DNA of 35,479 nt from Octopus bimaculoides. Lineage: Eukaryota. Made by a program: the position numbers and the translations under genes. Shown in pieces: positions 1-23,965 of the stretch (its first letter is position 1; each line of letters begins with the position of its first letter). Below the pieces are notes generated by a model, which was given only the letters and a program-made list of their open reading frames with translations, was not told where the DNA came from and searched no databases. The stretch covers positions 17,238,672 to 17,274,150 of the forward strand of contig NC_069000.1 of assembly GCF_001194135.2 (NCBI RefSeq), given 5' to 3'.

Positions 1-55
1 ACATATATATATATATATATACATATATATACATATATATATATATATGATACAG

Positions 56-136
56 ATACTAAAATGATACAGAGAAGATTAGCATGGCCCCTGCGCAATG
101 ATAACATGCAAATTCGTGAAGCGTTCCATATTTTTT
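56..136 (+). pseudogene. RNU6: U6 snRNA pseudogene, 5'-truncated
   Basis: ATACTAAAAT-GATACAGAGAAGATTAGCATGGCCCCTGCGCAA..AAATTCGTGAAGCGTTCCATATTTTTT matches U6, including the ACAGAGA box. It lacks the 5' stem-loop, has a ~6-nt deletion (TGGAAC) and substitutions, and has (AT)n upstream instead of a promoter. Confidence 0.93.
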
Positions 137-139
137 ATA

Positions 140-510
140 GGTGCAGGAGTGGCCCTGTGGTAAGAAGCTTGCTTCCTAACCACATGGTTCCAGGTTCAGT
201 CCCACTGCGTGGCACCTTTGACAAGTGTCTCCTACTATAGCCTTGTGCGGACCAAAGCTTTGTGAGTAGACGAAAACTGAAAGAAGCCCATCGTGTATTT
301 GTGTGCGTGTGTGTGTGTATCTGTGTCTGTGTTTGTTCCTCCACCATCGGTTGACAACCGATGTTGGTGTGTTTACGTCCCCGTAACTTAGCGGTTCGGT
401 AAAGGAGTCCGATAGAATAAGTACTAAGCTTACAAAGAATAGGTCCTGAGGTCGAATTGTTCGACTAAAAGCGGTACTCCAGCTTTGCTGCGGTCAAATG
501 CCTGAAACAG
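140..510 (+). mobile_element. tRNA-derived SINE, family A (near full length)
   Basis: A-box TGGCCCTGTGG, B-box GGTTCAGTCCC, CORE-like GCACCTTTGACAAGTGTCT and an internal (GT)n. Homologous copies at 24200-24595, 32300-32610 and 34888-35208. Confidence 0.85.
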
Positions 511-553
511 GAGCTAGCTTAAAAGCCGCACTATCGTGCGGCTTTTAAACTAG

Positions 554-623
554 TACATACATACATACATACATACATACATACATACATACATACATAC
601 ATACATACATACATACATACATA
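554..623. repeat. (TACA)n microsatellite
   Basis: Perfect tetranucleotide run. Confidence 0.95.
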
Positions 624-624
624 C

Positions 625-1101
625 AATACCAGGCACTGGCTCTCATGACTTCTAATTCTAAATTGATTTGAAGTGTTATCATGTACATATTTTGTCGTAG
701 TATAAAAGATGGACAACAGCAAATATTCTGCTCAATACCACAGATTTGCTAGTCAATTGTTTAACCTTAACCAGTTGAGCATGTCTCTTGGTGGTTGACC
801 ATATGTGCATCTCTGATCACGAGCAGAAGTAGTGGGGGGGGCATCATAGCTATGTATTGAGAGGAATTCTCTGGGATTTGAATAATTCACCTTTGGAAAC
901 ATGGGTGTTTCGTTGGACATCCTTCAACAAACCTTATTCGAAGACCTCTTGAGCAGGATGAGCTACTCGACCTGAAGAAAATTCTAACTGGGCCCCACCT
1001 GCAAGGTCATATGTTGTTTAACTTGATATGAGATAACCATGTCGCGCACATATGGTTGTGATGCATGTGCCTGGCGTACCCTCACTTTGATGACATGCAC
1101 T

Positions 1102-1102
<1 letters not shown>
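625..1102. mobile_element. Unclassified interspersed repeat (family E)
   Basis: The 715-885 segment (CAATACCACAGATTT..CCTTAACCAGTTGAGCATGTCTCTT) recurs at about 21020-21180. Confidence 0.6.

Positions 1103-1171
<69 letters not shown>
1103..1171. repeat. (CT)n microsatellite
   Basis: Perfect dinucleotide run. Confidence 0.95.
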
Positions 1172-1175
<4 letters not shown>

Positions 1176-1899
1176 TTACATACGTACATACATACATGCA
1201 TACATACATCTGAGTTTCTAAAATTTGTATTTAGTCACTAACGAGCGAACGCAACGTTATAATAGACATATGTATGTATGTATATATATGTAAGTGTACG
1301 TGTGTTTCTTTGTGATGAACAGCAGAAAAGCCACCTACCCCTTCTCTCCTTAAAGCTACGTATTCCTCACAGCCACCTTTCTTTCCCTTCCTCGGCGTTT
1401 TAAAATTTATTTATGAGCATGTGTGTGTATGTGCGTATGTATCTATGTATTTACGAAAGTAAGTATGCAGCTTCGCGTGCAAATGACAGCTGTATTAACG
1501 TTAACGTCCCACTGCCACTCTATATTTGTCGCTTACAAAACGTTGCCCTCCCCTTCACTGATATCAATCACATTCACTATGCCACCACAGCTATAAACTT
1601 AGCAAGTACTACCGACCCGTAATCCTAAATCTAGAAACCAACACTGATTCTACTTTAGCTAAATCATTAGTTTCCCGATGAGTCTTCGTAATTCTAGAAA
1701 CAACACATATAATAAACATGAAAATTATATACTCCATTTAAGAAAAGAAAACATTTTGTAAGTAAGAAGCCGATCATATATATATTTGCATTTGCGCCAA
1801 GTTTAACTGTTCTGAATCAAAATGGAATGGTATAGGGCGGGAGATTTTACCAACTGCTGCTCTTACTATTATATGAACGATTTTGCCATTAATAATACT

Positions 1900-2325
1900 G
1901 TATTATTTCTTATTTGCTTCTATCTAGAAATCGAAGGAAATGACTATTATTCCCTTCTAAATTTGCTTTTGTGGCCTGAATATCAATGTTTTGAAATTGA
2001 CCTATTTCCCATTATATTTCAGACAGATTAAGCGCTGAGTCACCGAAGCAGAATTTTCTAGAACTTTCTAGAAGTTTCAAGAACTTTGAAGAACTTTCTA
2101 AAAGTTTCAAGAATTTCTAGAACGTTCTGGCAACACAGATGGTAATACAAATACAGAAATCATAATCTCAACAATTCAGTTTATTTCTAACTGTCAAAGT
2201 GGAAACAAGTTTGAAGCAAGCAAAGTTGGAAGGAAATATTAGCCTCCTTTCGGACATTCTAGGGGAAGGTAAATATGAAATAACAGTTGCTACCTAAGGA
2301 CAAAAATCGTGTTACGCGGTGTAAT
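1900..2325. mobile_element. Unclassified interspersed repeat carrying an HSE array
   Basis: 1905-2052 aligns to about 20870-21010, and 2215-2325 aligns to about 21188-21300. Termini not resolved. Confidence 0.7.
2050..2127. promoter_or_regulatory. Heat-shock element (nGAAn inverted-pentamer) array
   Basis: GAAttTTCtaGAActTTCtaGAAgtTTCaaGAActTTGaaGAActTTCtaAAAgtTTCaaGAAtTTCtaGAAcgTTC: 16 cores, 14 perfect. The motif match is direct; function is untested. Confidence 0.6.
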
Positions 2326-2743
2326 ATGTACAGTCATCAAGTCATCGTAGACATTTTCGTTTCTTTGGAAATCATATTTTCCAGTAGGGTCTTTGGATTT
2401 GTTTCAGTTATGTAGATGCAATATCAACACATGACTTAGGATAGAGAAGAGTGTACCCTAAATTAAGTCCCTTCGTTTCTTACAGCTCAGTAATATATAC
2501 AGTTCTCAAAATTCGACCTATTTTCACTTCGTCATTTACAATATTTGCATATATTGCATATATATAAAGTCATAAATGTATAGAATTTTTTATTACATTA
2601 TTATATCAACGGTTTCGTTGATTTTTGAGCGTCAATAATTGGCTTCATTATTTCTGTGCAGGAAAATTGTAATTCATACCTCGTTACAAGTTTTGTCACT
2701 CACTCTAATACTTGTTACATTAACACTGTACTTCTGTTTCTCC

Positions 2744-2960
<217 letters not shown>

Positions 2961-3704
2961 CTTCCATCTCTACTGAATATACATATGTACATGCATTATG
3001 TATGTAGGCATGTAATTTCAGATCAGTATCTCTCTACAAGTCTGTAACTCATGCTGTTATTAACTATAAATGGCCAACAAATAAAAAAAATATTAAAAAA
3101 AAAAAATCACACAGATTGTCTTTATATGCGACAAGAAATACTTCTCTTAAATGTTTGCGGGTGTTGTTCAGCTATTTCTTCATGCAATCAAGAAGCATAT
3201 TTTCATTCACCATCCCAATTACGGTTCATCTAATAACCAGCTCTCAAAACTATACGGCCAAATAACACCCGCAACAATAGCATGAAGTGTAGAAAGAGAG
3301 AAAAGGGTCTGAGACCCCTTCCTCTCTCTCTCTCTCTCTCTCTCCCTCTTTGACTGTTGGTTTTGCTTGTGTAGTTTATTTCAACCAATTTTCCACCTTT
3401 CCTTCCTCTATCCCTCATCAAACCGGAACGCCTAAGAAAATCATTTCAGCTGGTGCGTATATTTACGGTCCATTTCTCTCTGTGTTGAAATCCCACTAAG
3501 GATAGCTTTGTTATTCGTCTTTCCTTTCGACACCGGCAATCCTTCGATATTGATAAACGACATCATTCACCTATGCAACCTTCCTACATGACATAGATTA
3601 TAGAGGCTAGAGTGAAATAGAGGGTGGATGATTTCGTCTCTTCATACCAACACTCTCTAGACACATATCAACAGAATGTCCCGACACCTATAAAACGAAG
3701 TTTA

Positions 3705-4075
3705 CATGTTGGCACTCCGTCACTTACGACGTCGAGGTGTTCCAGTTGATCCGTTCAACGGAACAGCCTGCTCGTGAAATTAACGTGCAAGTGGCTGAGC
3801 ACTCCACAGACACGTGTACCCTTAACGTAGTTCTCGGGGATATTGAGCGTGACACAGCGTGTGACAAGGCTGACCCTTTGAATTACAGGCACAACAGAAA
3901 CAGGAAGTAAAAGTGAGAGAAAGTTGTGGTGGAAGAGTACAGCAGGGTTCGCCACCATCCCCTGCTGGAGCCACGTGGAGCATTAGGAGTTTTCGCTTAA
4001 TAAACACTCTGGGAATCGAAACCGCGATTCTATGACCGCGAGTCCGCTGCCCTAACCACTGGGCCATTGCACCTC
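3705..4075 (-). mobile_element. tRNA-derived SINE (family D)
   Basis: Minus-strand head GAGGTGCAATGGCCCAGTGGTTAGGGCAGCGGACTCGCGGTC..GGTTTCGATTCCC with A and B boxes, followed by a ~300-nt non-tRNA body. Confidence 0.8.
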
Positions 4076-4548
4076 TAAATAAAACAACGTAACAATGAAG
4101 TATTAGACTCGATTTAATCGACTACACCTTTCATCACTCCCACCGCCATCCCCAGCTTTGTGGCATTGCGCTATTGCTGCCGATATTCCGGTTTCAGCGT
4201 TCGATATTTCTTCATCCATGTCCATTTTTCAATTAAACACGTTCAGCCTAAAGCAACATCTACCAAACTACTGATAACCACTATTTCATAATTAAGAAGC
4301 GAGAGGGAGTGGGTGGGGGGGGGGCGATTAGTACAATTACGACCACCAGAACTATCAGTAGCATTCCAACACAGCCACACTTGACATATTATCTGATCTC
4401 CTAGCTTAGGTAAGTCACATAGAAGAATTTTTTTTTTTTTTCATAACATAATAAATCCACTGATTGGATCAAAACCGCATAAGTCAAACCTTGTTAACTC
4501 CACACGCTTTCCTCTTTTTACTCACTTTATATTCCAAACTACAGCTAT

Positions 4549-4745
4549 TGTGTGTGTGTGTGTGTGTGTAAATATATATATATATATATTTATATATGTA
4601 TATGTGTGTATGTGTGTGTATGTATGTATGTATGTATGTATGTATGCAAGTATGTATGTATGTGTGTGGAGGCCCGCTAGTATATACATACATACATACA
4701 TACATACATACATACATACATACATACGTACGTGTGTGTGTATGT
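4549..4745. repeat. Compound (TG)/(TA)/(TATG)/(TACA) microsatellite
   Basis: Direct reading; (TATG)n and (CATA)n blocks face each other. Confidence 0.9.
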
Positions 4746-5007
4746 GTCATTATTCAGTTTCATTTCAAGATTTCTTGCCAATAGAGAAAGAGCCGGTTTC
4801 TGTCTGTCTATCTATTTTTCTGTCTGTCTATCTGTCTATATGTATGTATGTATGTATGTTATCAATCAGTTTCATTTCTGTATTTCTTGTCAATAGAGAA
4901 AGAGCCGGTTTCTAACCTAGATCCAAGGCTCCTTCATTGGAATTTCAACAACATCAACAGAGTATTTTTGTTTGTTTCTACGTATGTATGTATGTATGTA
5001 TGTATGC

Positions 5008-6328
5008 TTTTCAAAACTCTGAGGAGGGGATTTACATAAAATATCGAACAGGGAATGTTTTTAATCTAGCCAGACCGAAATTCAAAACGGAGGGTTTTAC
5101 TTCACTCATTAGGGAACTTTTGTATGCTGATGATTGTGATCTTGTCAGTCATTCTGAAACAGGTCTGCAATCTCTTGTATCTGCATTTGAATCAGCTTGT
5201 GATGATTTTGGCTTGACCATCAACTTGAAAAAAAACAGTTGTGATGCATCAACCTGCGTGTGGTGCTGTTTGTAACCCACTAAAGTTTTTGTTAAGAGTG
5301 CAAGTTACTTCAGGTTGTCGATTCGTTTCACTTACCTTGAAATCTCTATACAAAATGATGGAAATCTTGATACAGAAATACCGCTGTGACTTCAAAGGGC
5401 AGCAAAAGCATTTGGTTGCTTGGAGTCACACGTTTCGTGCCAGAGACATATAAATAAGAATACAAAGCTGGCTCTTTACATATCATTTGTCTTACCATCT
5501 CTGTTGTATTCTTATGAAACATGGCCTTGTTATGAAAGGCATTTTAAATTGTTAGGACAAATCCACCAAAAATGCCTTCATCGCATTTTAAACATTAAAT
5601 GGAGTTCTTTTACTCCAAACACAGATCTCCTTGCATCTTCAGGCATCACTTCAATTAAAGCTATGATTCTGAGGAACGAAATGAGATGGTGTGGCCATAT
5701 TGTTCGTATGGCGGATGAACACATGCCGAAACAACTGCTTTATGGTGAGCTTACAGAGGGGAAAAGCTATCAGCGTAAACCTTAAAAAAAGGTTAAAGGA
5801 CAGCATAAGAACTACTATGAAATCATTTGGAATGGATCCAGAAGACATAGAAACCCTTGCTTCGGATCGAGTTGGATGGCGAACAAAAGTGTGGAGTGGA
5901 GTGAAAGTAGTTGAAGAGGCCAGGATAACGCATGTAAAACTCAAAAGAGATCTAAGGAAGAATGTCGCGATCGAGAAGGTGAATGACAATAACGTTTTGC
6001 TGGGCTCAAATCGCATTTGCGAACCCATGGAAAACGAACCTCCTCCAACTATTCTGCCTATATGTCTGTGCACACCTTTGAATTCAGTGTATGCCGGAAG
6101 GTTTGCAAATCTTACGGAGGCCTCAAAAGACATTTTAAGATCCTCAAAGATCAGAACTTATCTGCAGCCCTTGGTGATCCAAATCGGATGTGCAATCTAT
6201 GGTGGGTGTCTTTTCAGAACGTTGTCTGGTTTAATAAGCCACATCAGATGATATGGTGGTGCTAAGGTGTAGGTACAGAAGGTGGTCAAACTCTGCATAA
6301 GGAGTAGACAGCCACCATGTATGTATGA
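5008..6328 (+). mobile_element. RTE-clade LINE, 5'-truncated and frameshifted
   Basis: RT with IRELLYADDC...FGLTINLKK, thumb LLYSYETW...HQKCLHRILNIKW, RWCGHIVRM..MPKQLLYGEL, then KRLKD...DRVGWR. Several frameshifts. Ends in a short ATGT tail. Confidence 0.92.
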
Positions 6329-7280
6329 TATAGATCATAAATGTCTTATATTCTGTTTTGAATTAATTTATGTCGCTTAGCAATTGCAGATAAAGTTGAA
6401 CGATTGTCGTGCTGATAACGGCTTTTGAGCCAATAATACGTGTCCACTGCTATCCTCTAGCCTCCAGACAACCTCCTTTTCCTTGACGGTATGTCAGCTT
6501 TGAAGAATCCATGAATCTTGAGATTATCTCCCTTTTTTAAATGGGGCTGATCTTGTCATTTTGTAATTATTATATTTCCTCTTGGTTTGGAGATAATTTT
6601 AATAAATCAAAAGTTTATGTTGTATGGTATTTGATCTACTTGTATTTTTCTATAACATCCAATATATTGCCAAATTGCTTCAAGCTGAAAATGAAAATTT
6701 ACATTCAACGATCATCAAATATGGTTGAATGGAGAACTATGGCTTGGATTCTTTGCTATGAGACACCTGAAACGTAACATTTGGTTCATGGGGCTAAAAG
6801 TTGCTGCGAAGATCCGAAACGTAATTCCACGATGAAAGAACTAAGTCCAAAGTGAAAATGTACAAGACTGAGGCAGTGGGCCATCAGAGTTATGTCCCTT
6901 GGATGAATTGCCGCAGTCCATGACCTGCAAGCGAGGATTCAAGTAGTAAAAGTTCCACTCCACCGCCACCAGTATTATACATCTGATTGTAAGGGCGTGA
7001 CAATCTAAAGGGAAAATGTACAGAAGTAGAATGACAGGGTGGTGAAGAAGTTATTTTTAAACCGGATCGGTTGCGTATATGCATATGTATAAATTTGTAT
7101 ATATAAATGTTGGAAGTATGTGTAAGAGTAATACTAACTCCTCGCTTAAGATGAGAGGAACGCTGGTGACTAGAATAGTTAGATCAAAAGTCAATTCGTA
7201 CCATAGACAATCGCGAACGGCTTGATTTGAATCGACAATGCATGTTTGTGTGTGTGGGTGAGAGAGATAGATAGAGAGAG

Positions 7281-7475
7281 ACCACTGCTTGACAACCGAT
7301 GTTGGTGTGACTACGTGCCCGTAACTTAGCGGTACAGTCATAATATTCGATAGAATAGATACCAGGCTTCTAAAAAAAATAAGTACAGTAGTTGATTCAT
7401 TAGACTAAAAATTCTTCAAGGCAGTGGTCTCACCGTGGTCACAATCTAATGACTGAAACAAATAAAAGATAAAAA
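7281..7475 (+). mobile_element. SINE family A, 3' half
   Basis: GCTTGACAACCGATGTTGGTGTG..CCCGTAACTTAGCGG..AATGACTGAAACAAATAAAAGATA, shared with 140-510. Confidence 0.75.
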
Positions 7476-7848
7476 AAAAAAAACATTTGCATACACGCAC
7501 TTGACTCGCATACAGACACACAAAGACGCATATTCATGAGTACCAGTTTAGAAAACAATCACGTGATAGTCACGCCTAAATTAGAATAGAGTAGTTTCCC
7601 TTGTTTTGAATTCAATATTCATCTACAATTGTTTTCATATACGAAGATCTAGTGAGTTCTGAGATTTTTGTCTCCTATTACGTACATAACGTATTCTTCG
7701 CTCAACTTTTTCTTCTCTTCGACCAATACATTCTATCACTGCTCTTTCCTCTTCTTGTTTATTTTCTTTTTGCTTTGTTTTTGCCGTTTCTCGCAGTATT
7801 AGAAATTACTGTTAAACTTAAGGTGTGTGTGTGTGTGTGCGCGCGCGC

Positions 7849-7891
<43 letters not shown>

Positions 7892-7923
7892 NNNNNNNNN
7901 NTATATATATATATATATATGTG

Positions 7924-7954
<31 letters not shown>

Positions 7955-8297
7955 GGCGGCAATCACACATTACGTACATTTATGACATAAACTTGAAACC
8001 GAAACACGTATGCAATCTTACGATCTACCGTGATCATAGACCGTTTTTTATTTTTAGGCGGTGGATTATTAGTTAACGGAAATTTTAGTTATGTGTGTAT
8101 ATAATTCTTATTTGGAATGGTGCTTCTCGAAGTAGATAAGGCGTGTAAATACTAAGTTTAAAACATGTTGGGTGTGTCTGTATCTCGGTAACGGCAACTA
8201 AAAATATTAAAATTTGATTACCATTACAGCAAAGGGTTATTGAATACGCAATAGTCGTAAGGTAATAACTATATTTCTGTGTGTGTGTATACGTACT

Positions 8298-8328
<31 letters not shown>

Positions 8329-8877
8329 ACACACACATACATCGTTTTCTCCAACTACTTGAATTTGTCAATTTTCAAAGGATCATTTTCAAATTTTCCG
8401 CTCTGATGTAGTTTTGCATGCTGATCACGACAGTCGCATTCGATTTTTAGAAAAATTGATGATGATGAAGAAGTTAGAAGCATTTAAATTTACGTGACTT
8501 TAGCCAACGAAATAAAGTCCAGTCTCCACGCAAGAAAATTAAAAAGATATATATATAACACAAATGGGCTGAGGTTCACAACTATTTCAGACCTGTTTTT
8601 TTCTGATGATCAAATCACTCATATCATGTACTAGTCTAGTAAGTACATGAGTGTCCGTACACACTGTTGATACGCATCCTGTTGTTGACTACTTTGGTTT
8701 CATTAAAATAATGGACCAAGCGTGGTCCATCACTTGGATTGCAGTAAGAAATTTAAACTGTCCATATTTTAAACTCTGTTTTTTTTGTTTTTGTTTTTAA
8801 TTAGTAAAATTTAGAATTTACGGAGGAAGGGGAGTGGTTTAAAAAATGTCATTTTTTTTTTTTTTTTTTTTTTTTTT

Positions 8878-9317
8878 NNNNNNNNNNNNNNNNNNNNNNN
8901 NNNNNNNNNNNNNNNNNNNNNNNNNNNNNNNNNNNNNNNNNNNNNNNNNNNNNNNNNNNNNNNNNNNNNNNNNNNNNNNNNNNNNNNNNNNNNNNNNNNN
9001 NNNNNNNNNNNNNNNNNNNNNNNNNNNNNNNNNNNNNNNNNNNNNNNNNNNNNNNNNNNNNNNNNNNNNNNNNNNNNNNNNNNNNNNNNNNNNNNNNNNN
9101 NNNNNNNNNNNNNNNNNNNNNNNNNNNNNNNNNNNNNNNNNNNNNNNNNNNNNNNNNNNNNNNNNNNNNNNNNNNNNNNNNNNNNNNNNNNNNNNNNNNN
9201 NNNNNNNNNNNNNNNNNNNNNNNNNNNNNNNNNNNNNNNNNNNNNNNNNNNNNNNNNNNNNNNNNNNNNNNNNNNNNNNNNNNNNNNNNNNNNNNNNNNN
9301 NNNNNNNNNNNNNNNNN
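8878..9317. other. Assembly gap (440 N)
   Basis: N run. Other gaps are at 7892-7901, 13174-13281, 19409-19880 and 31868-31877. Confidence 1.
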
Positions 9318-11286: not shown

Positions 11287-11451
11287 ATGTCCGTGAACCC
11301 AAACCTTCCTGCTCAGGCACCTCGTTCACAAGAATGTGCCAGTCAGGTGGAGATCCGTATCCATTGTAAGGACCTGGTGAACAAGGATGTCACATCAAAA
11401 TCTGACCCATGTGCTGCTTTGTATATCTTCGAAGGTGCAAAATGGAGTGAG
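11287..11451 (+). CDS. CPNE3: Copine (copine-3-like) coding exon 1/14, start of C2A
   Basis: Acceptor ttcag at 11275, then AAAAAC-ATG. Encodes MSVNPN...VEIRIHCKDLVNKDVTSKSDPCAALYIFEGAKWSE (copine KD..SKSDP motif). Donor GTATGT at 11452. The paralog assignment is a similarity call only. Confidence 0.95.
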
Positions 11452-12093
11452 GTATGTGTTTATACAATGATATCCGTTATATGGCTATGGATGAGTGTAT
11501 GTATCTATGCAAGTAGTATATGCATAGAAGTATTTACCAAGGCTGAAAGTGCACAGAATGAGATGATCGAGCACTGCTGTTTGGGTGCTGATATTTTAGC
11601 ATGGCTGACTGAATATTCTGCTTATTTTGGCAACAGTACTTCTTCAAGGCAATGCCCCAGCATGGCCACAGTTAAATGACTGAGACAGATAAAAGATAAC
11701 AGATGTATAGCAAACAAATGTGTGCGTGCGTGTGTGTTTTTAAGGGAACTTAAAATATTTCAAAGCTAGAAAAAGACATGCAATTGAAATAGGGAATATA
11801 AGGGTTTTAATTACATAGTGAAGTAGAATTTTGTAAGCTTGTCCTGGAAAATTTTCTTCTGTATATAAGCCATCAAGGTTTGGGTGAAACTAGTCACCAT
11901 AACTCTGTTTCTGTCTAAGATCTTATTATAACTTTGTTTTGTAGACAAATGCTTATTTATAAAGGTTAGGAAAATACTGGCAATATTAGAACTAGCGCTT
12001 AAATCATATGGAGGATTATACCATAAAATATTTTGTTTTTTATTTGCATTCATGAGTATTAGTTCTGTTTCATTTATCTATTGGTAATTTCAG

Positions 12094-12273
12094 ATAGGAA
12101 GAACTGAGAAAATCAACAACAACCTGAATCCACAGTTCTCTACAGCTATTGGCATGAAATACTACTTTGAAACCGTGCAGAAGATCAAGATTTGTGTCTA
12201 TGATGTTGATAATGCAACAGCAACACTCGAGGATGATGACTTTCTAGGCAGTTTTGAGTGTACACTTGGTCAG
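12094..12273 (+). CDS. CPNE3: Copine exon 2 (C2A)
   Basis: [16 protein letters not shown]...[18 protein letters not shown]...[14 protein letters not shown]. tttcag acceptor, GTGAGT donor, 180 nt. Confidence 0.97.
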
Positions 12274-12298
12274 GTGAGTTATGAAGTACAGTATCTTG

Positions 12299-12332
<34 letters not shown>

Positions 12333-12655
12333 TAATAATATGGCATTAAACTGCACCCAGCTGTGGTATCACAACATGGGAAGAACAAGGTTACCCTTAA
12401 CCACAACTACCTGTAAGCCCACCCCAAGACTTATAAATACCAGGTTGGTGTTTGGCAGGGTCAAGCCTGTCTCAGAGGAGGAGGGGGTCACAGCAAACCA
12501 CTCTAGAGAAGGTCACTCAATAAAAACACCAATGGCTGTGTGTGTGTGTATATATATATGTATGTTTGTAAGTATGTATGCATGTGTATGATCAGTAACT
12601 ATACTTTATTAGTAAGACTATATGCTATACATAGGTTTTATCTCTGTCATTGCAG

Positions 12656-12730
12656 CTTGTCTCAGGTGGACCTTTGACCAAAAAGTTAGTCAACCAGAAA
12701 GGAAAACCATATGAAAAGAGTTATATTACT
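12656..12730 (+). CDS. CPNE3: Copine exon 3
   Basis: LVSGGPLTKKLVNQKGKPYEKSYIT. tgcag acceptor, GTGAGT donor, 75 nt. Not in the ORF track; read by eye. Confidence 0.92.
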
Positions 12731-13128
12731 GTGAGTATCTAACAATTTCATGACCTTCATTAATGTTGAGGATTCAGTGTTCAGTATGAAGGCTGAATTT
12801 TTTAAGAAACTTCTTTCCCCAATCCAATTACAGTGTACTATAACCTCAGATCAGTCTAAGCCATGAGTGAAATTGTGTAGAAGAACATTGGGTGGACTGT
12901 ATCTGTAATTGAAAAGGCCAGTCTTATGACATATCATTTCACATAAATATTGTTAAAGGATTCCATTAAGCATACAGTTGTCTGTTTGAATATTTTTCCA
13001 TTAATACTATAATACAAGACAGACTGTATCTGTTATTTGAAAGGCGCATTTTGTTATACACTGTCATACTGATTCTGCCAGTGTGTTACAGTAAGGGTAC
13101 AAGAGGCTATAGAATACTCAATTTTACA

Positions 13129-13173
<45 letters not shown>

Positions 13174-14704
13174 NNNNNNNNNNNNNNNNNNNNNNNNNNN
13201 NNNNNNNNNNNNNNNNNNNNNNNNNNNNNNNNNNNNNNNNNNNNNNNNNNNNNNNNNNNNNNNNNNNNNNNNNNNNNNNNNNTATATATATATATATATA
13301 TATATGTATATGTATGTATATATATACCAGTGAGCACACCTTTGTAATTTCAAAAACAAAATTATGTGTCCTTTAGAAAATCGGTACTTAAGGTCATGTG
13401 GTATTCATACAGCAACCATAGAGGCAGGCGTCTGGTGGAGATGAAAGCGGAGACTGGCTGGTGTCAGATACATCTCTGTCAGAGACAAGTTGCATGTGGT
13501 CAGTGGCATGTGCCAAAGGCATAGAACAGTTAAGAACTGGCATATTCTGCATTCTGCACAAGCAAACTGAATTTGGATTCACACAAGTAGATATCTGTCC
13601 CATATACATTAGGATTATCTCTCCTGATATGCACATTTTTTTCTCAGCCTTGCATCACATTTACCAACAACAAAATACTTTTCACAATTGGACATTATTT
13701 TCACCTTGTCTTAAAATGCATTTTTGTATGAATGCACGCTTTTCCCTAGATCGTTCGTTTCTTTTTTTAGAAACTCTCTAGCTGGGGAGTAGTGTAGGGA
13801 CCTCGCTTCACCCTTCTTGCTGCTAGTCAAAATGAACGGGAAATCCTCTCTACACTAGATGATTGATGAGGAAACACTCAAAGCCCTAGGACCTGTGCTG
13901 GTCAAGGAAAGGTCAGTCCTTTGTTTAGGGTTTGACCTACATTACTGACCATAGTCTTTATAGCAGAGAACACTTCCTATCTCTTACTCTTTTTATGTCA
14001 GCAGACCAAGGAGCAACACGCTCTTCTACATCAGCCATGACCAAGTGCAACACTTTCCTTTGCCCTTAGCTCGACGTACAAACAGAAGCTTTCAGCCACA
14101 AGAAAGACAACTTCAATCACTGTTCTTTTTCCATCTCGCATACTGGCAACCAGCACCTTAACAACACAACCGTTACAATTGGTGACCTTCGACTGCAATG
14201 AAGAACTAACTGTTACAAGTATTATTAATTGAATAACTGGAATACTTATCAGTGAAACCAACAGAGAATCCATTTATTTATAGTTTGGCATGAATTATGA
14301 TGTTACTTTATTGGAGGAGAAGGGGCAGTGGCATTCACTTTTACAGTATGTCTGACTGATAAGCTATCAACTTGAGTTCTTTTGGGATTGGTAACTGCTA
14401 CAAAAACACCATTGAGCTTTTTCACTTAACTCCTTTTCCTTTTATGTTTTCTGTCTGGTATTTCTCATTCACAATACATAATGTCTTCCCATTCCTTTGG
14501 AATACATCACAAATGGAAACATAGTCATTCTTCAGTAACACAACATAACTTAATTGTTTTGTATGTATGATTTTATATCATACACTACAAGTTTTTTTTG
14601 GTTTTTCTCCATCTACGTAAAATTCTTACCTTTAGATTTAATAACACTTGCATGTATATCATAACAATCTACTAAAATTTCTATCTTTCTGAAAATAATT
14701 TCAG

Positions 14705-14779
14705 GTGTCTGCTGAAGAAGTCTCAGAGAAAACAGAATTGGTTCAGTTGAGTTTTAAAGCCAAGAAACTTGACGATAAA
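14705..14779 (+). CDS. CPNE3: Copine exon 4
   Basis: VSAEEVSEKTELVQLSFKAKKLDDK. ttcag acceptor, GTAAAT donor, 75 nt. Confidence 0.93.
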
Positions 14780-15349
14780 GTAAATCACTTTCTAATGCTA
14801 TTTTTCTCCTTGATTTTCTTGTCTCTCATTTTCATTATTCTTAATGTCAAGAACATTGTCACCAATTTTGACTAACTTATTTAAGTACTTTGTATATATG
14901 TGTTTTATAAGTTAGAGAAGGAGAGGCAATGTCCACGATTTGCAGTCCCTCCTAGAATTGATGTGGTTGATTTTCAGTTTCAGCAACTGTTTTTCTACAT
15001 CTGCAGGAATGGGCTAGAAGGAAATTAAAAAAAAAAATTGGGTGAATTAATTTTAGTATGAAAATTTAGAGGACTGAAACATAGTAGAGATGATGCAAGA
15101 AGAAGAGGTAGATGTGTTGGGAGAGACAGAGTAGAAAGAGATATTCAAATGGCTAGTGCAAACCAAAACTCATACTAGTTGTAGAAGAGATAAAAAGAAT
15201 TAAAAATTATTGTGTTGGTGAATGAATTATTGTGCTCTATATGTGTTCACCATAGGGAACACATATAGAGACCATACTTGTAATTCAAAGGATTGTAATA
15301 AGAATATAAGTGTTTTGGGAATACTCAGTCACTTAACATCATAATTCTT

Positions 15350-15785
15350 TCTATTATAAGCAAGGCTTGACATTTTTCAGAGTGGGGCTAATCAGATCAG
15401 CCCTAGTGCACAGCTAGTACTTTATTTTATCAATCCTAAAAAATATGAAAAGGAAAGTTGTTCCCAACAGAATTTGAAATCAGAATGCACCTGCTTAATG
15501 TAATAATACAAGGTCTATTGTACTTGTAAATCATGTATAATGAATCTACTTTGAGATTACATGAGGCCATAGTAGTGAGGAAGGTGGATTGAGATAACCA
15601 TTAGAATGTTGCAAAATATATTTTGCAATATTTTTACAACTCTTTAGGTTCAGTGTTCAAATCCCACTGAGGTTGACTTTGCCTTTCATCCTTTCAAGGT
15701 CAATAAAATAAAGTACCAATCAAGGATTGGGGTCAATGGTGTTGACCAATTTCTCCACAGGTATTGTTCCTAAATTAGAAACTAC
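15350..15785. mobile_element. Two SINE family B copies, head-to-head (- at ~15350-15490, + at ~15575-15785)
   Basis: Shared core GTTCAAAT..GAGGTTGACTTTGCCTTTCATCCTTT..AAGTACCA..TGGGGTC in opposite orientations. Confidence 0.7.
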
Positions 15786-15797
15786 TTTTATTAGTAG

Positions 15798-16055
<258 letters not shown>

Positions 16056-16612
16056 TGAGGTCGTATCAAAAATTTCCCAGTCTAGTTCTGTAGCACACCA
16101 ACAGATGGCAGCACATGGTTATGTGTGCAGTGAGAGCTAGCAGTGACTTTCATAAGGCAATGTGTCTAGTAATATCGTGTTTACTTTGCAAGTTATGAAA
16201 TTTGTTTTTTATGTGATCGCATTTATGTTGTAGTCTGCGAATTTGTAATGGACAGGAACAAAGAGCCAACATGAAATTTTGCATGAAACTTGGGAAGTCT
16301 GCTACAGAGACATTGAGCATGCTTCAGCAAGCTTGCAGCAATGAGTTGTACCCAATGTTCTGAGTGGCATGGGAGTTTTAAAAGCAGAACATCCTGGAAG
16401 GTGACGAGCAATCTGGAAGACCTGCCACAAGTGTCACCCTCAGAAATGTGGTATTGTGCATCAAGAATTCATTCCTGAGGGCCAGACCATCAATTGAGAG
16501 TTCTGCTGTGACGTTTTGAAGTATTTGAAGGAGGAAATTTGGCAAAAGCAACCAGATCAGTGGAGCACGAAGGATAGGATTCTTCATGACGACAATGCAC
16601 CCTGTCACCAAG
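16056..16612 (+). mobile_element. Mariner transposon relic (left TIR, HTH start, internally deleted catalytic piece)
   Basis: TA + TGAGGTCGTATCAAAAATTTCCCAG TIR-like end. Encodes QRANMKFCMKLGKSATETLSML, ..SGRP, and GIVHQEFIPEGQTIN..ILHDDNAPCH (HDNA motif). Contains stops. Confidence 0.85.
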
Positions 16613-16962
16613 TCTGTGACTAAATTATTTAATTCTAGTAGGCAGGTGACGACATAAACTCTCATAGGTTGGTGATGTTATTTTTTAGCTCCAGACTGGT
16701 ACACATGTGATCATGAGTGTTCCAGTCATGACCATACCATCTTTCATTCAGACAAAATGTATCTGGGACTACATTATCCAGTGACTTCTTTCTTTTTTAA
16801 GATAGTAACATGCGATTTGAGAGAGGTATAGTTGTTGTTTTTAGCAGGTTAAGCAGCTACATAGAAGCTCCTTTGATTGGCTTGTACAACTGTTGCTATT
16901 GTTGTTTCAGTATTTCATTATTTACCTGTTCTATATCTCTCTCTCTCTCTATTATCTTACAG

Positions 16963-17052
16963 GTGGTGAAGAATAACTTGAATCCAACATGGAAAACATT
17001 TGAAATTACATCTCACACATTGTGTAAGGGAAACAAGACGTCACCAATTCTG
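16963..17052 (+). CDS. CPNE3: Copine exon 6 (C2B)
   Basis: VVKNNLNPTWKTFEITSHTLCKGNKTSPIL. ttacag acceptor, GTAATC donor, 90 nt. Confidence 0.95.
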
Positions 17053-17078
17053 GTAATCATTTTTATAATTATCATCAT

Positions 17079-17270
17079 GGGCACAGTCATGGCTGTGTGG
17101 TTGATAAGCTTGCTTCCCAACCATGTTGTCTCAGGTTCACTTCCCCTGATAGACACCTTGGTCACTTATAGCCCCAGGCCAACCAAAGCCTTGTGAGTGG
17201 ATTTGGTAGCAGGCAAACTTTGAGAAGCCCATTGTATATACATGTATATGTGTGTGTTTGTGTGTACTCT
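17079..17270 (+). mobile_element. SINE family A, 5' half
   Basis: ATGGCTGTGTGG..AAGCTTGCTTCCCAACCATG..CCAAAGCCTTGTGAGTGGATTTGGTAG. Confidence 0.75.
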
Positions 17271-17754
17271 TGTCATGACATCATGGTTGTAAACGAGCAT
17301 CACCATCATACAAGTGGTATTGTTCTTTTCCATTCTTCCATGAAAAATATGTCTGGCCAAGAGGAAATATTACTTTACTTGGAAATAGGTGAGGGTTGGC
17401 AACAGGAAGGGCATCCAGACAGAAAATATGCCTCAACAAAGCATGGAAAAATGAATGATAAATGATGATGATGACCTCCAGTATCAGTGCCGTTGTTGTT
17501 GTTGCTCTTGTTGTTATGCATTCCCTGACCAGTGCTCTGGCACAAGTGACCACAAATAATGTGGGAAAAAGCACAATTAAATCTATGCAAAACTTAACTT
17601 ATTTTATGAATCCTTGAAGAAATAAAGAAAACCAACACTGGAAGGATTTAAAATAATAGTGTGTGAATGGACATAACTGAGTGCTACAAAGCATTTTGTT
17701 TGATGTTCTACCAATTCTACTATCCATTTCCCTTAGTAGTAGCAGTAGAAATTC

Positions 17755-18155
17755 TTTCTAATATAGGCACACTGCTTGAAATTTATTGGGAGGGGGATAG
17801 TTGATTGCATTGACCCCAGTGCTCAACTGGTACTTCTTTTATCAACTCTGAAAGGATGAAAGGCAAAGTTGACCTCAGCAGAAAATAATAATAATGACAA
17901 TGGTGGTGGTGGCGGCGGCGGCAGTGGCTGCTGCTGCTGTTGTTGTTGTTGTTGTTTAAAATTTTGGGGCGAATAATTTCAGAGAGGGTGTAATTCAATT
18001 ATATTATCCCCAGTGTTCAACTGGTACTTATTTAATTGATCCCAAAAGGATGAAAGGCAAAGTCAACCTCAACAGAATTTGAACTCAGAATAAAGACAGA
18101 CAAAATGCCACTATGCATTTTGTCTGGCATGCTAACAATTCTGCCAGCTTGCTAC
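17755..18155 (-). mobile_element. Two SINE family B copies separated by trinucleotide microsatellites
   Basis: CCCCAGTG(C/T)TCAACTGGTACTT..GAAAGGATGAAAGGCAAAGT occurs twice. Confidence 0.75.
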
Positions 18156-18164
18156 TTTAATGAT

Positions 18165-18590
18165 GATCATCATCATCATCATCATCATCGTTTAACGTCC
18201 GCTTTCCATGCTAGCATGGGTTGGACGATTTGACTGAGGACTGGTGAAACCGGATGGCAACACCAGGCTCCAGTCTGATTTGGCAGAGTTTCTACAGCTG
18301 GATGCCCTTCCTAACGCCAACCACTCAGAGAGTGTAGTGGGTGCTTTTACGTGTCACCCGCACGAAAACGGCCACGCTCGAAATGGTGTCTTTTATGTGC
18401 CACCCGCACAAGCCAGTCCAGCGGCACTGGCAACGATCTCGCTCGAAAATCCTACAGGAGCCAGTCAGGCGGTACTGGCAACGGCCACGCTCAAAATGGT
18501 GCATCTCATGTGCCACCCGCACAAGAACCAGTCCAGGGGCACTGGCAACGATCTTACTTGGCTTGCCGGGTCTTCTCACGCACAGCCCAT
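18165..18590 (-). mobile_element. SINE/non-autonomous retroelement family C with (GAT)n tail
   Basis: GGTTGGCGTTAGGAAGGGCATCCAGC core and ..CCATGCTAGCATGGAAAGCGGACGTTAAAC(GAT)n end. Other copies at ~22275-22530 (-), ~24795-24880 (+), ~28655-28995 (+) and ~17380-17475 (+). Confidence 0.75.
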
Positions 18591-19024
18591 TTGATAATAA
18601 TAATAATAATAACTATCAGGAGTACCCGGCGTTGCTCAGGTATTAAATACTCGGCAATGGTCTTAATAGGTTCTACCATTTTTATCGTTGTACATCTCTT
18701 TGAATATTTTTTGCATTAAGTTGCAAACATTGACATTGAGGAAGAAGTGATTTTTCCCAAGTGGCATTTATTAGTTGAACAGGAACATCTGACTTTTATA
18801 ATTTTGGTGTCAAAAGGACTGTCATGTAAAAGCTTTTTGTTGCATGCAACTTTTGCCTTTTTTTTGCAAAAAGTTGGGGGTCCCTTCAGTTTTATTGATT
18901 TTTCTCCTAGAAGTGGGTATCTCTAGGCATCAGTAATGTGGTAGTGACTTGCCTGGGTAAATTTGCCATTTAATAAAATAAATTTCATCAAAATTGGATG
19001 AAAAATGTGGAAACGCATAAAAAG

Positions 19025-19066
<42 letters not shown>

Positions 19067-19084
19067 TTTTGAGTTTTATAGATA

Positions 19085-20256
19085 TGTAGTGAAACTACCT
19101 CCCGCCATTAGATACAAACTACTATCGCCATTACATACAATCTTCTCATTTAAATATAAATAAATGCGAGCGTAGTAGAGAACCCATTCCTTGTCCATCA
19201 CGTGACTGATCATTATTCGAATCGGCAACTTCTTCGAACCTTTCCCGCCAGAACGCAAACTGACCAATCACGGCCCCTAATAAGGTCACGTGATAGAGTA
19301 AAATTCTAAAGGCATTTGGAGCCCTCTTAACGCTATATATAGATCAACTCATACCCAATAATTTGTCTCGGTCCAGTTTCTCTTTGAGAACTGTTCCGTG
19401 TACCACACNNNNNNNNNNNNNNNNNNNNNNNNNNNNNNNNNNNNNNNNNNNNNNNNNNNNNNNNNNNNNNNNNNNNNNNNNNNNNNNNNNNNNNNNNNNN
19501 NNNNNNNNNNNNNNNNNNNNNNNNNNNNNNNNNNNNNNNNNNNNNNNNNNNNNNNNNNNNNNNNNNNNNNNNNNNNNNNNNNNNNNNNNNNNNNNNNNNN
19601 NNNNNNNNNNNNNNNNNNNNNNNNNNNNNNNNNNNNNNNNNNNNNNNNNNNNNNNNNNNNNNNNNNNNNNNNNNNNNNNNNNNNNNNNNNNNNNNNNNNN
19701 NNNNNNNNNNNNNNNNNNNNNNNNNNNNNNNNNNNNNNNNNNNNNNNNNNNNNNNNNNNNNNNNNNNNNNNNNNNNNNNNNNNNNNNNNNNNNNNNNNNN
19801 NNNNNNNNNNNNNNNNNNNNNNNNNNNNNNNNNNNNNNNNNNNNNNNNNNNNNNNNNNNNNNNNNNNNNNNNNNNNNNNNACGATCTGGTATAATTGCTC
19901 ACGTGTCATTTACTGACTCTTTCTATCTGCTGTAATAACTCACACATGTATCACTCACATACACACTTTTCTTTGTACGACGGCCTGTCTTTGATTATGT
20001 TCTTATATGTCGCATTCACACTCTCACACAGACATACATCTTTAACGCTACAATAAATATTTCTGTTATTCATCTAATACGGTTGTGGTCTTTCATTACT
20101 GGTCATCTATGTTATCGTCGCATAACATATTATATATATCATTCATTGATATATCTATTGTATGTTCGACCGTGTGACACGTTTAAATAAAAGGAGTTCT
20201 GTTTTTCCATTCGTCACCATTTCTCCTTTTATGAGTTCGCACGGTCGTCCCTTACA
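19085..20256 (+). mobile_element. Probable LTR (solo LTR or collapsed LTR element) in copine intron 6
   Basis: TGTA...TACA termini flanked by an identical 4-bp GATA (19081-84 and 20257-60). CpG-rich, with CCAAT, a TATA-like box and AATAAA in U3-R-U5 order. 472 N lie inside. Confidence 0.72.
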
Positions 20257-20326
20257 GATATATATAAATAAGATAGATAATAATAATAATAATAGTTTGT
20301 TTTTTACATTTCATTCTGTATTTCAG

Positions 20327-20425
20327 ATCAACTGCTACGACTGGGATAGTGATGGATCCCATGATATGATTGGTTGCTGTGAGATGACTTTGTCAGAAAT
20401 GATGCAAGCAAATTCAAGAAATGAA
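20327..20425 (+). CDS. CPNE3: Copine exon 7 (C2B, YDWDSDGSHD loop)
   Basis: INCYDWDSDGSHDMIGCCEMTLSEMMQANSRNE. tttcag acceptor, GTAAGA donor, 99 nt. Confidence 0.95.
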
Positions 20426-20618
20426 GTAAGATTATCTTAATAAATAGAAAAGATGGTTTTGGTTTTTAGTGATGGGTGGTTATCATGTAGTAAGTGTTCT
20501 TATCTCTTTTTCTTATTTCGAACAGTCACTTCCAACTTCAGTATAAGATCAGAAAGGTTTATGTGGAGAGAGGGGGGAGAGAGATAAATACTTTACTTTT
20601 TTTTTTCTTCTTCTTCAG

Positions 20619-20696
20619 GTTGTCAAGTTATGTATTCACCCCAAAAATGCTGCAAAAAAGAAAAGTTCTGGAAGTATTATTTTATATGCCTGTAAA
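20619..20696 (+). CDS. CPNE3: Copine exon 8 (end of C2B, basic patch)
   Basis: VVKLCIHPKNAAKKKSSGSIILYACK. Long polypyrimidine tract plus cag acceptor, GTAAGC donor, 78 nt. Confidence 0.88.
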
Positions 20697-20869
20697 GTAA
20701 GCAAACACTTTTTTTTACACAAACTATTAATCTCATAAAAGAGAAATAATTTGAAATTTATTAACAAGAGATTCTAAAAATGAGAGATTTTATGTAAACA
20801 TTGTGTAACAAAATTTACATTTTTATTTTTAATTTTTTCAGTCTTTGGTCAGTAAATGTTATTTTATAG

Positions 20870-21300
20870 TTGCTTTTATCTAGGAATCAAAAGAAATGGC
20901 TACTATTCCCTTCAAACATTGTTTTTGTGACCTGGACATCAATGTTTTGAAAACTGACATATTTCCCATTACATTTCAGACACATTCACTGCTGAGTTGC
21001 TGAAGCAGAAATATTGTTATAGCAAATCTTCTGTCCAATACCACAGATTTTCTTGTCAGTTACTCGACCTTAACCACTTGAGCATGTCTCTTAGTGGCTG
21101 ACAATACATGCATCTCTGAGATGAAGCATAGGAAAGCATCATAGCCATATGTTAGGAAGGATTCTTTGGGGTTTGAATAAATGTAACATAAGCAAAGTTT
21201 GAAGTAAACATTAGCCATTTTTCATACTTTTTAAGGGTAATCAAATAGGAAATAACAGTTGCTACCCAGGGACAAAAATTGTGATACATAGTGTAATAAG
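20870..21300. mobile_element. Second copy of the 1900-2325 repeat, with a family-E segment in the middle
   Basis: Flanks align to 1905-2052 and 2215-2325; the centre aligns to 715-885. Confidence 0.65.
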
Positions 21301-22775
21301 CAGCTATTTTGTGACCCCTGGGGGTTTTAGCGGAATTCACTTTGTTGCAAGCATTCGGGATTCGGGCTTACTTCTATCCTGGAAATAACTTCTTTCCTGT
21401 CCATTTCCCTTGTAGTCTTTGAGATCTTGAAAGAAGGCCCATATTTTTCTCAGCAAACACCCAACAACATTTTCTTAAAACTATAGACATGATTCAGTGA
21501 TTACAAGCATTCTATTCTACATATGCATTCCATAGTTTTCATAGAAAGCAGTTGTTGTTGTGTTTCTACTCCATGTTCATAGAAGCTTATGACAAAGCAT
21601 CCTATTTTTTTCTGGCACCAAGGGAGCTTCTACAGGGTTGCTGAACTTCCTAGAAATAACAGCCAAATCACCATCAAACCTTGTACTACCATCTTAAAGA
21701 AAGAAGGATACGTTACACAATGTATCCTTATATATGTCAGCATGGAAAACAGATGTTAAATGATAATGATGATGATAAGCTATGACACAGTTGTTGATGT
21801 TGCTTAGACCTAAGTCATCCTTCATTGAGCAGATCTACCATCAAAGATATTCTAGCTGTGACCATCCTGTCTTTTTCATTTGTGCAAGGAACTCAGGGCT
21901 ACATTATTCAATATGTTGTTTCCTAAGACATTAGGCTGCAATTTGAGAGAGATTTGGCTGATGTTTTGAGCAGGTCAACAGTCATGTAGAGAATGGCTCA
22001 ATACAATACAGTAAATGACATTGGTTGGGGCACTGTTGTTGATGTTTGACTTCTAGTCAACTCTCATTCAACTGACATGGTGAAAGATATCATGTGACTA
22101 TCCAGCTTTTTTGGTTATTTTGGGGCCTTTTTTCTATATCAGGTATAGTGTATCCTTGACTATGTTGTTCAGTTTGTACTTTACTTTTTTATGGCAGTCC
22201 AGCAGCATAGCATCTGTAAAGCTGCATCAAATTAAATAGTTATGAAAATCTTGAGGAATACTGTTTAATATTGGCCATCATCATCATCATCATTTAACAT
22301 GTTTTCCATGCTGGTTTGAGTTAGATAGTTTGACTGGAGATGGTAAACCAGAGAGCTTCCCAGGCTCCACTCAGTTTTGGTTTGGGGTCTATGGCCGGAT
22401 GCCCTTCCTAATGCCAACCACTGCACTGAGTGTCTTTCACATGTCACCAGTACAGGTGTCTTTTATGTGTCGCTGGCACGGGTGCCTTTTATGTGCCACC
22501 AGCACAGGTGCTTTTCACACATCACTGGCACTGTCCACAACCACAATTTCACTTAGATTGAAGTGTCTTCTCAAGCACTGTATTTCACCAGAAGTCTCAG
22601 TCACTTGTCATCACTTCAATGCCATTTCACCACCTCATCCCATATCTTCTTGGATCTACCTCTTCCACAGGTTCCTTCCACATATTTATTTTTCACTATA
22701 GTACATAACATTTATTGCATGATTGCAACCTCAAATTTAAATGGAATATTTTCAAAGAGTCCGTTCTTCTTACAG

Positions 22776-22835
22776 GTGTCAATATTACCATCTTTTTTGA
22801 ACTACATTATGGCAGGAACAAACATCAATTTTACG
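22776..22835 (+). CDS. CPNE3: Copine exon 9 (linker into vWA)
   Basis: VSILPSFLNYIMAGTNINFT, matching copine SFLDYIxGG..xNFT. ttacag acceptor, GTAAGA donor, 60 nt. Confidence 0.93.
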
Positions 22836-22949
22836 GTAAGACTCTTTCTTTTCTTCTTTTCTTTTTAACTGCTTTACATCCCTGCCCTAACTGAGTGTTT
22901 CCTTCCCATTACACCAATAGTAGTCTAGCAGTATGCAATAATTTACTAC

Positions 22950-23755
22950 TAGCCAAGGCCTGAAATTTTGATGTGGTGGGGAGTATTCTATACCATCAAC
23001 CCTAGTACATGACTGGCACTTTATTTTATCAACCCTAAAAAGGGTGAAAAGACAAAGATGACCTCAGTAGAATTTGAACTCAGAACATAAAGAGCCAGAG
23101 CAAAGCAAAGCATTTTGTCTGGCATTCTAGCAATTCTGCCGAAAGAATAATAGAAATAATAATTCTTTCTACTATTAGCACAAAGTTTAGAATTCGAGGA
23201 GAGAGGTATAGTTGATTATTTTGATCCCAATGCTCACTGGTGCTGAAAGGAAGAAAGGTAAAGTCAACTTCATTGTAAAGACAAAAGAAATGCTAATTGT
23301 CTGACATGCTAATGATTCTGCCAGCTTATTGCCTTATAGTAATAATGATAATGATAATAATAATAAAAATGGTTTCAAATTTTGCCTCAAGGGCAGCAGT
23401 TTTTTGGGGGAGGGAATGAGTTGATTACATCAACCCCAGTGTTCAACTGATACTTATTTTATTGACCCCCCACAAGGTTGAAAGGCAAACTTAACCTCAG
23501 TGGAATTTGAACTCAGAATGTAGCAATGGGCAAAATACTGCTAAGCATTTTGACCAATGCACTTACGATTCTGCCAGCTCACCACCTTAATAATAATAAT
23601 GATAATAATCCTTTCTACTAAAGGTACAAGGCTTGAAATTTAGGGGGAGGGGTCTAGTCGATTACAGCGATCCCAGTGTTTCCCCTCCTACTTAATTTAT
23701 CAACTCTGAAAGGATAAAAAGCAAAATCAACCTCAGTGGAATTTGAACTCATAGA
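22950..23755 (-). mobile_element. Stack of four SINE family B copies in intron 9
   Basis: Four successive GGAATTTGAACTC / AAAGG.AAAGTCAAC / CAATTCTGCC motif sets, separated by (TAA)n tracts. Confidence 0.75.
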
Positions 23756-23965
23756 TAGCCTTGAACTTTTTCTATCCAAAATCCCCCTCACAAAACTTCA
23801 TGGCCTTGTGGCGAAAATTTGAAACCATTATTTACAGGTTTATTTGCTTCAAGTCTCATTGTTCCAAAAGAGAAATTATTTCCAATTCTCTCAAAGTTTC
23901 TAAATTCTTATATGTATGTATGTATATATGTATTTATTAATGTTTGTATGTTTTTATATTTATAG

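Follow-up and report, generated by a model that had tools for sequence, protein, structure and literature searches.

A minisatellite with the heat-shock-element consensus in one rearranged copy of a dispersed octopus repeat

Heat-shock factor (HSF) recognizes DNA as a trimer that binds three inverted nGAAn units, with cooperativity between adjacent trimers and a preference for A before the GAA; HSF1 is presumably present in octopus. In Arabidopsis, the LTR retrotransposon ONSEN (ATCOPIA78) carries heat-shock elements (HSEs) in its LTR as part of the family consensus, and these make the element heat-activated. Repeats of the CORE-, V- and Deu-SINE families are modular and have a common central core domain. 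One of the closest described systems is that of the Caenorhabditis Helitrons, in which clusters of tandem overlapping HSEs recur in many copies, HSF-1 binds them and heat-induced genes are associated with them (Garrigues et al. 2019, PMC6927752), a real precedent that had been invoked in the first-pass annotation of the DNA described here. Human satellite III repeats are reported to be bound by HSF1 (review, PMC9032817). Our search of the literature for HSEs in octopus repeats returned no paper.

The DNA analysed here, referred to as the window, is a stretch of 35,479 bp from Octopus bimaculoides (GCA_001194135.2, chromosome CM046620.1). Near its left end lies an array of 79 bp, AGAATTTTCTAGAACTTTCTAGAAGTTTCAAGAACTTTGAAGAACTTTCTAAAAGTTTCAAGAATTTCTAGAACGTTCT, which was read base by base. 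Two features of this array are as follows.

2050-2128, no strand assigned: HSE-consensus array of 16 inverted nGAAn units with 14 perfect cores, a 10-bp unit AGAACTTTCT and a 30-bp higher-order period.
2050-2084, no strand assigned: uninterrupted run of seven perfect units containing five overlapping trimeric HSEs, the strongest predicted HSF site.

In 5-bp steps from 2050 the array reads AGAAT TTTCT AGAAC TTTCT AGAAG TTTCA AGAAC for the first seven units, TTTGA AGAAC TTTCT AAAAG TTTCA AGAAT for the next six and TTCT AGAAC GTTCT for the last three, so that nGAAn and nTTCn alternate throughout. This anatomy is seen directly in the letters. Units 1-13 are in phase, the imperfect ones being unit 8 (TTG) and unit 11 (AAA); a 1-nt deletion (a missing T) follows position 2114, after which the last three units are all perfect, with the last core ending at 2127 and the last unit at 2128. 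The earlier count of 13 cores in phase with the first seven perfect, a 1-nt slip, three more and 14 perfect cores out of 16 proved exact when the letters were read again. Where an HSE is defined as at least three contiguous inverted nGAAn pentamers on an exact 5-bp register, the array provides seven that are contiguous and perfect, 13 that are in phase and 16 in total. The trimeric HSE (GAAnnTTCnnGAA or its complement) has six overlapping matches, starting at 2051, 2056, 2061, 2066, 2071 and 2115, and none in the rest of the 35-kb window, of which the array is also the sole place with at least three phased perfect units. The longest perfect run observed is seven units; when the window was shuffled 200 times, no run exceeded three, and chance does not account for the array.

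Because seven contiguous pentamers are perfect for AGAAn/nTTCT and 16 units are present in all, the seating of several HSF trimers follows fairly from the binding rules. The capacity for four to five trimers proposed at first pass is likewise a reasonable reading of the consensus; the whole array could hold that number, and its first 35 bp should be a very strong candidate HSF site. HSF trimers should thus be able to bind the array in vitro, and HSF binding to it is plausible. The array resembles the Caenorhabditis Helitrons in having tandem overlapping HSE motifs in a copy of a dispersed or mobile repeat, away from classical hsp promoters, and differs from them in density, with six trimeric HSEs in 79 bp as compared with more than 10 per kb over longer stretches. 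It resembles human satellite III as a tandem repeat with a unit like an HSE pentamer that could recruit HSF1 outside protein-coding promoters. Satellite III is, however, a megabase-scale pericentromeric GGAAT satellite, whereas the octopus locus is a single 79-bp array of strictly inverted GAA/TTC units.

The array lies inside copy A (1894-2329) of a dispersed repeat of ~440 bp. Positions 1903-2053 of the window recur at 20859-21010 (82%) and positions 2218-2326 at 21190-21298 (79%), and profile searches set the limits of the arms of copy A and the extent of copy B. A third copy, D, was found elsewhere in the genome, together with a related repeat, X.

1894-2058, plus strand: left arm of copy A, 82-84% identical to the left arm of copy B, ending ...GAAGCAGAA.
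2129-2217, plus strand: remainder of the centre of copy A (89 bp), unique, with no homologue in copies B and D, in X repeats or in any fetched locus.
2212-2329, plus strand: right arm of copy A, common to copies B and D.
1897-1971, no strand assigned: first inverted-repeat partner, ~75 bp, pairing with 2218-2293 in a foldback around the centre.
2218-2293, no strand assigned: second inverted-repeat partner, pairing with 1897-1971.
20849-21302, plus strand: copy B, in the copine intron between exons 20616-20702 and 22764-22838, without the array.
21011-21189, plus strand: centre of copy B (180 bp, the 170-bp X core), ~80% identical to window 716-886.
680-1082, plus strand: free-standing X repeat of ~400 bp, retroposon-like, with a (CT)n tail and a core common to copies B and D.
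Locus L006, 15625-15830, minus strand: copy D, 7.5 Mb from the window, intronic in a copine paralogue.

Between their shared arms the centres of copies A and B are unrelated. Copy D is 5'-truncated: what it has is the 3' portion of the X core and, after it, the right arm. The junction between the two matches that of copy B save for a 21-bp deletion. The independent copies B and D thus both have the X core and lack the array, and the same is true of their three orthologues. As B and D share both the core and the junction, and as each is conserved in more than one species, it is arms plus X core that has spread on two or more occasions. On these alignments copy A is the odd one out of the three, and its right arm is the most divergent from their consensus (a hand count on the alignment). 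The description of the array as lying inside a dispersed repeat therefore holds for its position, since the arms recur at copy B, but not for the array itself, which is outside the repeated part. An nhmmer search with a profile of six core sequences gave no match in the centre of copy A. We also considered whether the sequence that follows the array in copy A (GTTCTGGCAACACAGAT) is what is left of the beginning of the X core (TTCTG..CAATACCACAGAT), an origin that would have allowed the array to be placed on ancestral sequence; the idea was dropped, the local alignment having p ~0.3 against shuffles. Further X repeats lie in O. vulgaris locus L004 (16407-16794 and 17614-17991) and in locus L009 (15959-16173), and the X tail is a microsatellite that varies, being (CT)n at 680-1082 and (AAT)n in one of the O. 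vulgaris copies.

The octopus DNA compared with copy A amounted to ~470 kb in nine loci (L001-L009) reached via protein matches, of which ~430 kb is other than the window. Within these ~430 kb, from O. bimaculoides, O. sinensis and O. vulgaris, there was no HSE run of at least four perfect units and no homologue of the centre of copy A. Copy B has orthologues at the corresponding site, L003 27086-27537 in O. sinensis and L004 51454-51906 in O. vulgaris, at 92% identity, with an X-type centre and without the array, and copy D is conserved in O. sinensis (L009 26803-27006). The sister loci used for comparison, 113 kb in O. vulgaris (L004) and 57 kb in O. sinensis (L003), are both collinear, the window matching L004 from 5502 to its end. 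Further to the left, a single-copy block at 3016-4645 matches L004 11239-12465, and homology breaks exactly at window 3015/3016. By direct comparison, window 1172-3015, with copy A and its single-copy flanks (1172-1893 and 2327-2750), is absent from the fetched parts of L003 and L004, among them the next 11 kb upstream in L004. Neither locus has a homologue of any part of block 1082-3015, which hence offers no demonstrable empty site for copy A; the neighbouring block 680-1082 is itself a repeat, and O. vulgaris homology resumes only at 3016. Copy A may accordingly be specific to the O. bimaculoides lineage, may have been lost in the other lineage or may be displaced beyond the fetched region.

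The periodicity of the array points to how it may have formed. Tandem Repeats Finder (TRF) reports a period of 10 (8 copies, 78% match) and a period of 30 (2.7 copies, 84%), the latter scoring better. The higher-order period is also seen directly in the letters, as the variable spacer base of successive decamers runs T, C, G, then C, C, G, then T, C, and recurs every 30 bp, and the decamer pair AGAAG-TTTCA reappears 30 bp on as AAAAG-TTTCA. When the array is written in 30-bp rows, the first row differs from the third at 2 of 20 positions and from the second at 4 of 30. The array thus has the head-to-tail units of 10-60 bp, the unit variants and the higher order of a minisatellite, and the 30-bp period is the mark of tandem duplication. 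Since the 10-bp period corresponds to two HSE pentamers, the expansion of any GAAnnTTC seed gives exact 5-bp phasing automatically, and a 10-bp minisatellite can by construction mimic an unusually long HSE array, which calls for caution. Seeds of this kind are available, with 12 GAAnnTTC and 13 TTCnnGAA in the 35-kb window. The array is also self-complementary, a quasi-palindrome that forms hairpins in the predicted fold, and such a structure favours slippage. Its first AGAA is part of the left arm of the family. In copies A and B alike this arm ends GAAGCAGAA, and identity between the two continues through these letters and stops there.

We suggest that a seed AGAAnnTTCT, a palindrome-like 10-bp unit whose first AGAA would have been supplied by the left arm of the family, duplicated inside the rearranged copy A of an old ~440-bp repeat, and that the 10-bp units may then have diversified into a 30-bp block which was later duplicated itself. 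An origin by slippage would be in keeping with this course. Taking the evidence together, we lean toward the array being a real HSE-consensus minisatellite, generated by local tandem expansion in the one rearranged copy, private as far as sampled and with an incidental potential for HSF binding; this is the reading that we consider probable, with room for doubt. The default is that the array is neutral, or at most an incidental predicted binding site. Like ordinary minisatellites formed by slippage or unequal exchange, it has a 10-bp unit, a 30-bp higher order, variant units and one indel, and it lies inside a decaying repeat copy. It departs from them in that its unit is exactly two inverted HSE pentamers and in that it is the only complex 10-bp array in ~470 kb. 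Among 882 TRF rows from that DNA no other 10-bp minisatellite is complex, in the sense of not being dinucleotide-derived, and nearly all other period-10 arrays are of low complexity (TG, TA or CT type). The array is therefore not a routine by-product of a microsatellite-rich region, and this counts against a private expansion. The divergence between rows, 10-25%, is of the same order as that between the arms of copies A and B (18-21%), which indicates that the expansion is not recent; that an array of such age is still largely intact also counts against a private and neutral history.

The nearest gene lies to the right of the array.

11287-30981 (stop near 30981), plus strand: copine-3 coding region, XP_014784992-type, 550 aa, the gene nearest to the array.

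The O. bimaculoides copine-3 protein matches the exons of the window with up to 100% identity, and a 469-aa reconstruction of the copine in the window finds the O. sinensis copine-3 orthologue; a lachesin gene follows downstream. From the array to the copine-3 ATG (11287) we measured 9.16 kb, in agreement with the ~9 kb given at first pass. There is no open reading frame (ORF) of at least 70 aa on either strand between 348 and 2638, so the promoter-proximal setting of a classical HSE is not that of this array. Its surroundings are rich in microsatellites. The nearest coding remnant is a fragment of a LINE reverse transcriptase at 4.9-6.3 kb, the next being copine at 11.3 kb. The LINE fragment (4937-6251) is frameshifted, and its relatives, 65-81% identical, are O. 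vulgaris hypothetical proteins. The observed/expected ratio of CpG is 0.56-1.18 over 1-9 kb as compared with 0.04-0.4 over most of the copine gene body, in which 18-21 kb (0.60-1.05) and 28-29 kb (0.42) are exceptions, and the description of the array as lying in a CpG-retaining region is thereby borne out. The sharp contrast between 1-9000 and 10000-35479 reads as the footprint of gene-body methylation, and the intergenic DNA around the array is probably unmethylated. Copy A has kept eight CpGs and the intronic copy B one, which implies that much of the divergence between them is CpG decay in B.

This setting bears on whether the array could be a functional, lineage-specific heat-responsive element, at which HSF1 trimers would bind cooperatively on heat shock and drive a non-coding transcript or act at a distance on copine-3 or on a gene to the left of the window. 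The extended consensus AGAAn/nTTCT, perfect over seven contiguous units and kept in 14 of 16 overall, speaks for such a role, as do the CpG-retaining and probably unmethylated intergenic DNA and the rarity of such arrays, with none elsewhere in 430 kb. The cores are also better kept than the spacers: among the eight decamers, changes fall at 2 of 48 core sites and 9 of 32 spacer sites (p = 0.005 in a naive Fisher test, and p ~0.025 in a binomial test when hand-counted as ~9 independent events). The cores could thus be under constraint, but units were inherited in 30-bp blocks and the finding was itself chosen for its intact cores, and for these reasons the contrast is not counted as evidence of constraint. 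On the minus strand, a TATA-like AAATATAATG is found at 2019-2010, ~30 bp beyond the left edge of the array, where copy B has AAATGTAATG. The arrangement of array and then AAATATAATG is the HSE-then-TATA order of hsp promoters, with no ORF after it. Together, the TATA-like motif and the contrast between cores and spacers give weak hints of more than neutrality. Against a functional element stand the absence of any hsp-like or other ORF of at least 70 aa at 348-2638, the microsatellite-filled surroundings, the 9 kb to copine, interrupted by assembly gaps and a LINE fragment, and the lack of a counterpart in the sister-species loci. We therefore regard a heat-responsive role as unlikely, though it deserves to be taken seriously. 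Should HSF1 bind the array and heat activate it, this would represent a strong stress-responsive site born in one step, from a two-pentamer seed expanding in junk DNA, and the example would come from a cephalopod, a group in which cis-regulatory evolution has hardly been studied. As it stands, it is a single array, private as far as sampled, with no neighbouring target gene, and it makes a clean candidate for a binding or reporter test.

It is also conceivable that copy A belongs to an array-bearing subfamily which carried HSE arrays to many places in the octopus genome, in the manner of the Caenorhabditis Helitrons. The precedent exists (PMC6927752), the right arm of copy A, being the most divergent of the three, could stem from a different source element, and the array, with rows about as divergent as the arms of A and B, could predate the insertion of A. 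On the other hand, copies B and D and the three orthologues are without the array and share a different centre, and nothing like either the centre of copy A or its array occurs in the ~430 kb compared from the three species. The comparison covers three family copies (A, B and D) in ~470 kb sampled from a genome of 2-3 Gb, and among them the array does not recur at the same position in B or D. A random sample of ~68 kb of O. vulgaris DNA, reached via LINE-fragment genes, contains no copies of the family, and a 27-base probe conserved in all three copies had 0 matches in JGI metagenome contigs. The idea of a repeat family that spreads the array thus finds no support in the copies reached: where the first-pass annotation had envisaged the array as cargo of a transposon, an unrelated 170-bp core takes its place in copies B and D and in the orthologues of these copies in O. 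sinensis and O. vulgaris. We consider the spread of HSE arrays by such a subfamily improbable, and we give little credence to the bolder form of the idea, in which copy A would be one visible member of an array-bearing cephalopod repeat subfamily that seeds long candidate HSF-binding arrays across the O. bimaculoides genome. Were that form true, mobile DNA would have rewired the heat-shock response independently a second time, here outside nematodes and by way of a non-Helitron element.

The nature of the element argues in the same direction, as it fails the hallmarks of a Helitron (5'-TC, 3'-CTRR, a subterminal 3' hairpin and no terminal inverted repeats). The shared region starts ...ACTGTATTATTTC and ends ...GTGTAATA, and its arms form the ~75-bp inverted repeat, which copy B has as well and which is the main feature of the predicted fold. 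Unlike the Caenorhabditis Helitrons, then, the octopus element has a long inverted repeat and no 5'-TC/3'-CTRR ends, and its array, known from sequence, is found in one of three copies. Both the inverted repeat and the size of 440 bp fit a foldback element or MITE, but beyond the right repeat there are 33 bp that A, B and D have in common, no target-site duplication is identifiable and copy D is truncated at the 5' end. The element may thus be foldback or MITE-like, as its long inverted repeat suggests, or SINE-like, as suggested by the truncated copy D together with a core shared with a tailed retroposon. Copies A, B and D have no tail, while the related X repeat ends in a microsatellite. Rfam and tRNA scans of the element gave sub-threshold noise only, with no tRNA, 5S or 7SL-like pol III head. 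That the X repeats and copies B and D have this core in common suggests a family of modular build around it. As in core-sharing SINEs, B, D and the X repeats have a 170-bp core in common with different flanks, and D is truncated at its 5' end as retroposed copies often are. Differences from those SINEs are that no tRNA, 5S or 7SL-like head was detected, that neither an A-rich nor a microsatellite tail is present on A, B or D, and that the arms make up a long inverted repeat, an uncommon feature in a SINE. The likeness to ONSEN (ATCOPIA78) is that of a transposable element with HSF sites, here predicted; the octopus array, however, is outside the family consensus, and the element is without coding capacity.

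That the length or placement of the array is an error of a short-read-derived scaffold is hardly credible: the assembly is gap-rich (N runs at 7892, 8878, 13174, 19409 and 31868) and the order of upstream blocks differs from O. vulgaris, but positions 1-7891 are free of gaps, the units differ from each other and so are not a collapsed or stuttered perfect repeat, both arms are continuous with the array and the chromosome-level record is identical (L005 position 1 being window 1287).

Several further observations were made around the copine gene. Just upstream of the conserved block of the copine-3 promoter and first exon, O. vulgaris (L004 24038-35951) and O. sinensis (L003 1-9644) have ~12 kb extra, which in O. 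bimaculoides is missing, or was lost, between window 10409 and 10945. Next to the N gap at 8878-9317, the sequence at 9409-9625 matches, in reverse orientation and at 90-92% identity, a stretch of an O. sinensis copine intron (L003 41916-42133) and two places in O. vulgaris, and it is either a young repeat or a contig misplaced at the gap. In the O. vulgaris annotation, copine-3 and the downstream lachesin are fused in one 927-aa model (CAI9737714.1, L004 10001-103428), and this fusion accounts for lachesin proteins appearing in the same 90% cluster as copine-3. Downstream of copine, a 125-aa ORF (33728-34105) is represented as a predicted protein in UniRef and MetaClust with neither homologues nor a gene on record, and it probably arose as an artefact of gene annotation in the first O. 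bimaculoides release. The copine introns contain tandem repeats of their own, namely a 26-bp minisatellite at window 27861-28301 (17 copies, 71% match) and a near-perfect 30-bp triplication (95%) at 25814-25905.
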